A stretch of 64,000 bases of DNA from the sequence record AP018399.1; one strand, written 5' to 3'. The notes below the pieces were generated by a model, which was given only the letters and a program-made list of their open reading frames with translations, had not been told where the DNA came from and made no database searches. The position numbers were made by a program, and so were the translations under genes. Below are positions 45,041 through 48,609 of the stretch, one piece after another (position 1 is the first letter of the stretch; each line of letters opens with the position of its first letter).

Positions 45041-45355
45041 ATGAACGAAATCATCCAGAAGATGTTCCCCACTGGCACTCTCAATGGCCGTGGTGGTACC
45101 GAAGTGAACGGTCTGACCAAGGGCACGGTTCCGGCTGGTACCATTCTCAAGAGTGGACAGGACAAGTTCGACAACAAGGGCCGTCGTGAATTCTACGCGG
45201 TCGAACTGGATGGGCATGTCGCGTACCTGCGAGTGTGCGAAGCATATCCGGGTAGTGGCTATGACGAATTCGCGGTTATACATCGCGTCGTCAAAGCCGA
45301 AGAGACGGAAGAAGTGAATGAAATTCTCAACACCGTTTCTCGTATGACCAGCTAA
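45041..45355 (+). CDS. hypothetical protein
   Basis: Own promoter. Confidence 0.7.
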   Translation: MNEIIQKMFPTGTLNGRGGTEVNGLTKGTVPAGTILKSGQDKFDNKGRREFYAVELDGHVAYLRVCEAYPGSGYDEFAVIHRVVKAEETEEVNEILNTVSRMTS

Positions 45356-45362
45356 AAAGTAG

Positions 45363-45452
45363 TTGACAAGTTCGATTTTTGTAGTAAAGTATCAATCTCG
45401 GTGACGGCATAGAGGCCACTCACTGGTTCTTTAACAACTTGAGCGGAAACAA
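45363..45452 (+). promoter_or_regulatory. promoter plus rrn-like boxA leader
   Basis: TTGACA-N16-TAAAGT; hairpin; CACTGGTTCTTTAACAACTT. Confidence 0.6.
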
Positions 45453-45453
45453 G

Positions 45454-45646
45454 TTCATAGACTGAACATGCCTCGGTAGGTCAGTATGGTGGCAACACCA
45501 TCTGGGGATGAGGACATGCTAGGAACCAATATGCTTTGGATACGCAGTGGTCGTTCACTAGCCACGACTACGGTATACGCTATCAGCACACAATATGCAT
45601 TGAATGTGCGGCGATTTGAAAGCTAGAGGCGTGTTCAATCTATGAA
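45454..45646 (+). ncRNA. 193-nt structured ncRNA candidate
   Basis: 19-bp terminal helix TTCATAGA-C-TGAACATGCC / GGCGTGTTCA-A-TCTATGAA; GCAA tetraloop hairpin inside. Confidence 0.6.
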
Positions 45647-45650
45647 TTTT

Positions 45651-45775
45651 TGGTAGGTAAGCAAGTGGGCAACGTAAGACGGCAATGGTGTAGGTATCCG
45701 TGAGGTATCAGAGTACGGTTGAGTCTCCCAGAAACCGTTTCAACTTCGTGAGTTCGAATCTCACCCTACCAGCCA
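45651..45775 (+). ncRNA. 125-nt tRNA-like RNA with expanded core
   Basis: TGGTAGG/CCTACCA-G-CCA; T arm GTGAG-TTCGAAT-CTCAC. Confidence 0.75.
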
Positions 45776-45782
45776 ATTCTAT

Positions 45783-45847
45783 GCACAGGTTACTTGGAAG
45801 CATCCGGTTGCGCACCGTGATGGGTGGTTCGATACCACTTCTGTGCC
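45783..45847 (+). ncRNA. truncated tRNA-like RNA
   Basis: GCACAGG/TCTGTGC, T arm with TTCGATA, reduced D arm, no CCA. Confidence 0.5.
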
Positions 45848-45861
45848 GCGATTCGTATAGT

Positions 45862-46008
45862 ATTCTGATGGCGAAATAGGTAGACGCGGGGGTCTAGGCC
45901 AATATGGAGAAGGGAGCTAAACATTCCCTCTGCTGCTCATGGTCGGAAACTGCTGTGAAAGCGTTGCAGCAAAACGCTGACCGTGTGGGTTCGACTCCCA
46001 CTCAGAAA
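45862..46008 (+). ncRNA. Leu-type tRNA scaffold with large insertion
   Basis: D arm TGGCGAAATAGGTAGACGC, T arm GTGGG-TTCGACT-CCCAC, TTCTGA/TCAGAA. Confidence 0.6.
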
Positions 46009-46009
46009 T

Positions 46010-46430
46010 TACTATATAACAGTATGGTCGTAATCCCTTTAAAATGAAGGGCGTTCGGACGCGGGTTCGATTCCCGCCACGTCCACCACATGCATCTTAT
46101 AGCCAGAACTGAATCTGGTAAGAGGTAGTCAGCCACATTGAACCTTTCAGTAGAGCGCTGACCTAAGTCGCATGTAGTAACCCGCTTTAGGGTGCAAGTG
46201 ATGGGCGTGCCAAGGTTTCGACGGGCGAAGATAGTGGAGAAGGCGACTAGCCAGAGTAGGCTCTAAAACTAAAACCTAAAGTAACTGCCAACGCAAATAC
46301 TTTCGATTACGCACTAGCTGCCTAATCCCAAGCACATCCAGCACTTGGTCACCGAACGCTGGGCAATAGCAGTCCTTGGACTGTCTATTGTGAAACATCT
46401 TCTGGTTCAGCCAGCCTAGGCAAAAGACGC
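46010..46430 (+). ncRNA. ssrA: tmRNA, two-piece circularly permuted; tag (A)ANANTFDYALAA
   Basis: 3' acceptor piece ends CACGTCC-A-CCA at 46088; 5' piece GGGCGTG..TTTCGACGGG starts 46203; G3:U70; tag ORF 46287-46325; outer ends approximate. Confidence 0.9.
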
Positions 46431-46989
46431 ATGGCGGTATGGCACTCCGCATACAGAGGGTGTATTCACAATATGCAGTTCGTTATTGAGAGGAAATGTA
46501 GGTTCGATTCCTACGGTCGCCGCAGACCCCACTATGCTGGTCTGTGAAAAACAGTCGATATGGGTTAATATGGAAAACGCCTCTCATCTTTCAAATAGGA
46601 GTTGACAATGAGCATTGTTTTTGCTACTATGTCGGCTTCTGTAACAAGCTACGCCCTTGAGTAAGACAGTCAGGGAGTAAGCTCTTAATGTGAGCATGGT
46701 CGCCCCCACCTTTTGATAGGCTAGCCGGGGAGAGGTTCGAATCCTCTAAGCACCGTTAGGCTGAGACGAAAGGACTACGTTGCGAAGCATTGCACGCCAA
46801 TTCCGGAAACGGCTGGTAGTGTTAGCATCCGACTACAAGGGCACCAAATTAGGTGTTGACAAACGAAGAAAGTATGGTAATATGTACTTCTTCACCGGTA
46901 ACCACTGACGATTGGCCCACCGCAAAAGGGCCGAAACAGAGAGACACAAGCGAGTTTACCTCCTTCCTCGCCGTCTCCTGTCTGGTTTG

Positions 46990-47785
46990 ACAACTTGAGT
47001 GCGGAAACAATCTCAAGGTGGAATAGCGTACAGTGATGTGCGTAAAGTGTGGCCCGCTCAGGCTGCGCACCATGCAAATGGCTCCATCAAACAAGCACCG
47101 ACTCCGGGGCACGCCAAAAGTGTGTCACGGCCCTTGTGAAGAACCACGAGGGAACTTGGAAAAGGTGCCCGACAAGCTAGTCTTGGGACAACTGAGACAG
47201 TTTCCACCCGCAAAGTGGATTAGGGATGCAACACGGATACCAAGCACTAGTCAAGGTGTAGAACATAAGCATGAGGCTGCAACCAAGTGCGATGTTCAGT
47301 GAAGTGGGACTGTTTAACAGGCAGAACCGCATATACAATCCGAGTAGCCGCAAGCGAAAGGATACAGGGGCGTGTTGTATTTGGTACTTCAAAAGGGTAT
47401 CGAGCAACGGCAACACACGTCCTGAGCAACAAAACAACTTCATAGGTTAATGAAATTAATTAAACGCAAAGTTGTTGCCGGTGCATGATGAAAGTGACGT
47501 AATGCTTGACACGCAAGTGAATCAAGCCATTCCGAGGCTCGCAAGGCAGAGGGGTGTTGTGGGAAAGTCGCACGTTTGGGGTCGAACCCTTTACTGCTCG
47601 CAAGGCAGGCGGTAGACAGAACCATGAATAGTCATGCACGACAGTGGAAATGCCACCACTTTAATCTAGGCCGTCATGGTTGCTACTCACATGAGTGAGT
47701 GGATAACGGTAGAAACTTCGCTCGCAAGCGGAGTATAATGACCGGAAAGGTAACCAATCAATGCTGTAATCTCAGGCAGGCTTTT
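46990..47785 (+). ncRNA. about 800-nt giant structured ncRNA, GOLLD-like candidate
   Basis: No credible ORF; many GCAA/GAAA-capped hairpins; own promoter; embedded in the tRNA cluster. Confidence 0.55.
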
Positions 47786-48578: not shown

Positions 48579-48609
48579 AGAAGCCCGCCTAGTGCGGGCT
48601 TTTCTTTTT
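48579..48609 (+). terminator. intrinsic terminator
   Basis: AGAAGCCCGC-CTAGT-GCGGGCTTTTCTTTTT. Confidence 0.85.

Follow-up and report, generated by a model that had tools for sequence, protein, structure and literature searches.

The antitermination complex of ribosomal RNA (rrn) operons comprises NusA, NusB, NusE/S10, NusG, SuhB, and S4, and the rrn leader consists of a boxB hairpin, boxA, and boxC/the leader-trailer helix (PMC4807359, PMC10250234, PMC12360218). NusB/NusE read the 8-nucleotide (nt) core of boxA in a crystal structure (PMC3177189), and GYTCTTTAANA is the functional boxA consensus in gamma-proteobacteria (PMC5725501). Here we describe a candidate boxA leader, site A (45399-45455), in a stretch of 64,000 nt (the window) of the Xanthomonas citri jumbo phage XacN1 (AP018399.1). 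The queried part of the window was 100% identical to this record, matching it at two places. We consider it probable that site A is a working copy of a host rRNA-operon leader and that it heads one long untranslated operon of noncoding RNAs (ncRNAs), among them the giant RNA GOLLD.

A boxA matching GYTCTTTAANA is already known outside rRNA operons, in the leaders of suhB and of CRISPR arrays. Those are chromosomal host loci, and the boxA at suhB promotes termination. The long untranslated transcripts of CRISPR arrays depend on Nus factors to escape Rho, and the same logic would apply to the phage operon. A phage RNA signal with a boxA for host NusB/S10 and a hairpin after that boxA is found in nutL and nutR of phage lambda, but the lambda boxA is weakened and needs the N protein on a fixed 15-nt boxB (PMC2800207, PMC2724277). 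In contrast, the XacN1 boxA has the full consensus, with a host-like hairpin before it and a variable hairpin after it.

GOLLD (RF02032) has been studied by cryo-electron microscopy with a construct containing a 5' region of 420 nt and a 3' region of 413 nt, which forms a 14-mer nanocage (PMC12286853). In XacN1, GOLLD extends from ~46900 to 47778 and is part of a phage tRNA island, the usual setting of this RNA. The XacN1 genome paper places 56 tRNA genes in 66-kb terminal repeats and mentions no promoters, transfer-messenger RNA (tmRNA), or boxA. Both that paper and PMC12286853 are silent on how transcription of GOLLD might be protected, and our literature searches found no description of a boxA leader on a phage ncRNA operon of this type. 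The kind of leader is therefore known; what is new is its presence upstream of an ncRNA operon that includes GOLLD in a lytic jumbo phage.

The probable leader at site A

Site A is on the sense strand, with its boxA 35 nt past the -10 element of promoter P1, from which the start is predicted. The sequence GTTCTTTAACA (45426-45436), directly 3' of a leader hairpin (hairpin 1, Table 1), is a perfect match to GYTCTTTAANA. It is the single match in the window, where 0.12 were expected, and in the whole 385-kb XacN1 genome the consensus is matched only at site A, in both terminal-repeat copies. One other, relaxed boxA match in XacN1 was dismissed, being inside the DNA polymerase gene. The initial annotation had likened a 20-mer at 45421-45440 to the boxA context of E. 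coli rrn operons. The 20-mer is present as quoted, the E. coli rrnB leader indeed reads CACTGCTCTTTAACAATTT, and fold prediction confirmed that a hairpin lies 5' of the boxA-like run.

Site A was compared with Xanthomonadales rrn leaders from public genomes (94 distinct sequences), including that of X. euvesicatoria, which we take to be close to the phage host X. citri. The host leaders are ordered as promoter, hairpin, second hairpin, boxA, and a segment conserved across the Xanthomonadales. The second hairpin carries an invariant GGCGCTGAGGCC, and the host boxA is GTTCTTTGACAGT. In fold predictions, hairpin 1 and the second rrn leader hairpin of X. euvesicatoria give identical bracket patterns; two pairs of the outer stem differ between phage and host, and both differences are compensatory. 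Hairpin 1 and the host hairpin both contain CGGC...GAGGCCAC; among the 94 sequences, its complete form, including the flanking C and AC, is confined to leaders of Xanthomonas and of the S. maltophilia type. The comparison with host rrn leaders, which had been proposed as a check, thus shows that site A has the hairpin pattern of the host together with positions 2-8 of its boxA core.

The likeness may extend downstream of boxA. In the host, the sequence 3' of boxA is complementary to the 3' flank of 16S rRNA, and so forms the leader-trailer helix. At the relative place of that helix the phage has a 24-bp helix, which is kept via compensatory changes in phages Xoo-sp13 and CM1. The helix encloses a structured RNA of ~150 nt (45451-45649; 130-200 nt in Xoo-sp13 and CM1) that has no Rfam match at E ≤ 1. 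There is also some boxC-like agreement in letters between phage (AACTTGAGCGGA) and host (AAYTTGTGCGGA), possibly a chance likeness. A second hairpin, hairpin 2, abuts boxA; in metagenome relatives its stem is kept and its loop varies. Because AAGTT belongs both to hairpin 2 and to the 5' arm of the long helix, only one of the two can form at a time, and the pair may act as a co-transcriptional folding switch.

Site A shares with rrn leaders a promoter-proximal hairpin and a boxA with the host core, followed by the 5' strand of a long helix around a structured untranslated RNA as a possible counterpart of the leader-trailer helix, and its predicted role, shielding untranslated transcription from Rho, would be the same. 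It differs from them in belonging to a lytic jumbo phage and in standing before tRNA-like RNAs, a tmRNA, and GOLLD rather than rRNA. The phage also lacks the first host hairpin and, ahead of the helix strand, the 13-nt spacer.

Candidate boxA leaders in other phages

Homologous leaders were found in Xoo-sp13, in the Stenotrophomonas phages CM1 and RAS14, and in three metagenome contigs, and in all of these the leader is the best-conserved part of the unit. Its identity to XacN1 is 56-57/57 in the metagenome relatives, where the next 83 nt are ~70% identical, and 46/57 in Xoo-sp13 and CM1, where the downstream sequence is 61-67% identical. The stretch GTTCTTTWACAAYTTGAGCGG is constant in Xoo-sp13, CM1/RAS14, and the metagenome relatives, and TTGAGCGG is invariant across three phage lineages. 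P1 is likewise kept in Xoo-sp13, CM1, and the metagenome relatives; in the last of these, similarity to XacN1 starts at 45353-45359, which is the upstream edge of P1.

The consensus GYTCTTTAANA is matched perfectly by XacN1, CM1, the phage X1, and a 142-kb viral contig from IMG/VR (L177), and with one mismatch by Xoo-sp13. A hairpin is also found 5' of boxA in CM1, X1, and L177. In X1 and BUDD, which are Xanthomonas phages of ~200 kb, both the first promoter-like element of the tRNA/GOLLD cluster and the hairpin after it differ from those of XacN1. GTTCTTTAAAAA comes next, 17 nt before the first tRNA; the 12-nt pattern GYTCTTTNAMAA has a single match in each of the two genomes. L177 contains TTGACG-17-TATATT, a hairpin, a boxA stretch that is identical to the E. 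coli rrnB leader at 20 of 22 positions, and then a GOLLD unit (182 bits). The leaders of X1/BUDD and L177 have only boxA in common with site A, and the boxA core is the sole invariant block in an alignment of phage, host, and E. coli rrn leaders. One further match to the 11-nt consensus in X1 is inside an open reading frame, and other consensus matches in CM1 and X1, which have no promoter-hairpin context, were taken as chance.

Scans of IMG/VR with GOLLD 5' and 3' motifs returned only L177 and a second contig, L166. In L166 two boxA-pattern matches lie away from the RNA genes and the head of the tRNA cluster is without a clear boxA. A scan for an E. coli-type boxA returned L177, host rrn leaders, most of which lie at the end of a locus or close to it, and three sites that resemble lambdoid nut. 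These three are in proviruses (L179, L188, and L189), where a consensus boxA (GCTCTTTAACAATTTAACAG) just past a small gene is followed by a short hairpin. A scan with GAGGCCACT-N4-8-GTTCTTT gave 37 contigs, all of them rejected as chance matches, mostly apparently within coding sequence.

Two further observations were made on these loci. The GOLLD of L177 (302-776, minus strand) contains a tRNA (638-709) within its 3' domain and has a tRNA-like element 5' of its 5' domain. In X1, a promoter-like element of ~40 nt, GGTTGTGTAGAAAACAG ... CAACATGAAG, occurs before the tRNA cluster (L199:648-700) and again before GOLLD (L127:1887-1945), and may represent a phage-specific promoter class.

Site B and the surrounding operon

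The initial annotation had placed a second leader, here called site B, in front of GOLLD. The 28-mer quoted for it (46983-47010) is present, and the block shared by sites A and B, ACAACTTGAG(N0-2)CGGAAACAA, occurs twice in the window and in none of 100 shuffles. A distal complement of this block, as in rRNA-like pairing, was sought and none was found. Site B nevertheless does not precede the giant RNA. An alignment of five loci, all with Rfam GOLLD matches (XacN1, CM1, X1, BUDD, and L166), shows conservation from ~46900, ~10 nt past the predicted P3 start, through site B into the 3' domain. Site B is ~95 nt downstream of the predicted GOLLD start, within the conserved 5' domain, and the 420- and 413-nt regions of the cryo-electron microscopy construct likewise place it within GOLLD.

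The secondary structure agrees with this placement. TGGTT (46983-46987) pairs with AACCA (46900-46904) in a helix that is 100% paired in the alignment; in X1/BUDD an AU pair has become GC, and in a close metagenome relative a C-to-U change gives a wobble pair. Of the 8 pairs in the hairpin with the shared block, 6 are changed on both sides, and the close metagenome relative has in place of this hairpin an unrelated stem capped by a GAAA loop. Taken together, three helices of the 5' domain are 89.5% paired, with 9 of 20 pairs changed on both sides. Aligned on GACA, site B (GUCUGGUU) agrees with boxA at ~4 of 8 core positions, and it has no match to GYTCTTTAANA; the letters at this place in X1/BUDD are TGGTCTAGCAAC. 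The helix pairing, the covarying hairpin, and the failed boxA core thus identify site B as a structural element within GOLLD and not as a leader. The 20-nt identity between the two sites is particular to XacN1, and partly present in CM1. It could reflect exchange between two hairpins or a common binding partner.

The better picture is thus of a single leader, site A, heading an operon that contains GOLLD, with P2 and P3 as internal promoters. Four consensus sigma-70 promoters were identified on the + strand (45006, 45363 (P1), 46602 (P2), and 46856 (P3)), and two of them, P1 and P3, were confirmed as the TTGACA-N16 promoters of the initial annotation. No open reading frame of at least 50 amino acids overlaps 45391-45450, and no terminator-like site was found on the + strand between P1 and 48579. 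From this layout, P1 is predicted to head ~3.2 kb of untranslated DNA, containing the helix-enclosed small RNA, tRNA-like RNAs, a two-piece tmRNA, GOLLD, and three tRNAs. Rfam matched the GOLLD 3' domain, the permuted tmRNA (45972-46391), and many tRNAs. In a relative, P3 is covered by a metatranscriptome contig (46752-47050), which fits read-through from upstream but may also stem from DNA carry-over.

Table 1. Positions of the predicted features in the window
Feature	Position	Strand	Remarks
Promoter P1	45363..45390	+	TTGACA-16-TAAAGT, A-rich run upstream; predicted start near 45397
Leader hairpin 1 (boxB-like)	45399..45425	+	6-bp outer stem, 1-nt bulge, GGC/GCC inner stem, 6-nt loop ending GAG, AC bulge
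BoxA	45426..45437	+	GTTCTTTAACAA; core positions 2-8 GUUCUUU identical to Xanthomonas rrn boxA
Hairpin 2	45436..45455	+	AACUUG / loop AGCGGAAA / CAAGUU; abuts boxA; 3' strand overlaps long helix arm
5' arm of 24-bp long helix (leader-trailer-like)	45451..45474	+	88% complementary to 3' arm
3' arm of 24-bp long helix	45626..45649	+	
Permuted two-piece tmRNA	45972..46416	+	Within the P1 untranslated operon
Internal promoter P2	46602..46630	+	TTGACA-17-TACTAT
Internal promoter P3	46856..46883	+	TTGACA-16-TAATAT, directly 5' of GOLLD; conserved in CM1
GOLLD 5' domain	46900..47364	+	Alignment with CM1, X1, BUDD, and IMG/VR GOLLD loci
Site B	46983..47017	+	Helix 3' strand 46983-46987, linker TGACAA, covarying hairpin CTTGAG 46994-46999 / CTCAAG 47012-47017
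GOLLD 3' domain	47365..47778	+	Rfam RF02032, 227 bits, E 4e-63
Intrinsic terminator-like site	48579..48603	+	Likely operon end; only such site after P1 on the + strand

Across both strands of the window there are 82 near-consensus sigma-70 promoters (TTGACA, 16-18 nt, TATAAT-like), which suggests that the terminal-repeat region relies heavily on host RNA polymerase. Roughly half of them have a 16-bp spacer, so that this spacing, which had been read as an rrn-like mark, is no such sign. The sequence AGGTGTTGAC (46856-46866) is common to P3, its CM1 homologue, and Xanthomonadaceae rrn promoters (L099 and others), with equal 16-bp spacing to the -10 element. The two features together were considered as marks of an rrn-like promoter, and the spacer was rejected as common among phage early promoters. 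A degenerate boxA-like run after P2 (46636-46647; CTTCTGTAACAA) was also rejected. It has two mismatches, lies at the predicted P2 start, and is deleted in one metagenome relative, in which 46589-46649 are skipped and most of P2 is gone with the motif behind it.

Pieces resembling tRNAs lie between the leader, the tmRNA, and GOLLD, at 45650-45775, 45820-45850, 45880-46005, 46490-46525, and 46700-46760. They have a T-arm and acceptor-like ends, one of them ending in CCA, and none was called as a tRNA by ARAGORN or Rfam. In a relative from a soil metagenome, parts of the tmRNA spacer region (46090-46199 and 46328-46486) have given way to other sequence, with 86 nt in place of 108 and 101 nt in place of 157.

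Alternative explanations and biological meaning

Several results weigh against site A as a host-type leader. Run with filters off, a covariance model (R1) of the hairpin and boxA of 57 Xanthomonadaceae leaders did not report site A at E ≤ 10, and it gave no match at the homologous Xoo-sp13 site either; the model depends mainly on letters that do not vary among the hosts and that differ in the phage. Local alignment with host leaders ranks site A first in the window by a narrow margin (24 versus 23 and 22). The 7-nt core is found within 110 nt downstream of one of the 82 promoters, where ~1.2 were expected, and is thus unremarkable by itself. At position 9 of boxA the phages have A or U where the host has G, and hairpin 1 abuts boxA, whereas the host gap is 3 nt. 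The RNA support consists of contigs of relatives only, from which starts, strands, and levels are not readable and in which DNA carry-over is possible. Because the model, alignment, and core-count results are weak, the case is built on the longer consensus, on where the leader lies, on its hairpin architecture, and on its conservation and recurrence, and not on overall similarity.

The missing covariance-model match and the marginal alignment score speak for a reading in which the boxA likeness is coincidental and the conserved leader serves another purpose, for example 5' stabilization or a role as a processing signal or protein-binding site for the downstream RNAs. The conserved block indeed continues past boxA into TTGAGCGG, which has no known Nus role, and the overlap of hairpin 2 with the long helix suggests a folding switch. 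This explanation is unlikely in our view, since the consensus that singles out site A genome-wide had been defined beforehand in the literature, and since the one block that unites the phage leaders with those of the host and E. coli is boxA, which is also all that the leaders of the X1/BUDD and L177 ncRNA units share with site A. A different proposal is that site A is a lambda-type nut site, where boxA and hairpin 2 recruit a phage N-like protein with host Nus factors. The order of boxA and then hairpin is that of nut, as in the lambdoid prophage contigs of IMG/VR; the relatives retain hairpin 2, with GAGCGG/GCGG unchanged in its loop or close to it. The boxB of lambda is fixed at 15 nt, however, whereas hairpin 2 has loops of 4, 8, and 10 nt and a variable stem and Xoo-sp13 has another hairpin; between X1 and L177 no downstream hairpin is shared. 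There is also the hairpin 5' of boxA, placed as in rrn leaders and copying that of the host, and no N-like gene is known in XacN1, although no search for one was made. We regard a nut site as decidedly improbable.

Least probable of all, and in our judgment barely tenable, is that both sites are boxA leaders and that site B reloads Nus factors on transcripts from P3. Site B has 19-21 nt in common with site A, carries TTTGACA, which is the host version of the boxA 3' half, and follows a promoter with a 16-bp spacer. Against this stand the agreement at only half of the core, the pairing of TGGTT, the divergent letters in X1/BUDD, and a downstream hairpin that covaries freely and is wholly different in the close XacN1 relative. 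The idea of a borrowed rrn antitermination signal is accordingly retained for unit A, on the strength of host architecture, consensus, conservation, and recurrence, and given up for unit B, which is internal to GOLLD and fails the core. The expected conservation of the motif in relatives divides in the same way, being found at site A (Xoo-sp13, CM1/RAS14, and the metagenome relatives) and not at site B, which is not boxA-like in X1/BUDD.

For site A as a host-type leader, we infer from the sequence the following course of transcription start, Nus binding, antitermination, and processing. Host RNA polymerase would start at P1 (~45397) and transcribe hairpin 1 and then boxA (GUUCUUUAACAA). NusB/S10 with NusA, NusG, and SuhB would load on the boxA RNA, making the polymerase resistant to Rho and to pausing. 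Rho-resistant transcription would then cover the 3.2-kb ribosome-free stretch and end at 48579-48603. The 24-bp helix would act as the leader-trailer helix does in rRNA, and is a probable RNase III processing site. P2 and P3 would supply extra starts without a boxA of their own.

The long untranslated transcripts of jumbo phages, such as GOLLD, tmRNA, and tRNA-like RNAs, should be readily terminated by Rho. A boxA of the host type heading the operon offers a concrete and testable answer to how such RNAs get made, and it would link GOLLD, which is still without a function, to the machinery of rRNA transcription and folding. More tentatively, and with more doubt than belief, the ncRNA islands of jumbo phages could be viewed as miniature rRNA operons, in which the rrn complex, a co-transcriptional chaperone in the case of rRNA, would stop Rho and also assist the folding and processing of the helix-enclosed small RNA, the two-piece tmRNA, and the 880-nt GOLLD with its nanocage assembly. 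Bacterial expression of GOLLD-class RNAs may need a boxA leader. Signals of 12 nt such as boxA escape annotation pipelines in phage genomes, and if the arrangement seen in the XacN1 group, X1/BUDD, and L177 is general, boxA leaders would be a common, unannotated route by which lytic phages gain access to host elongation control.

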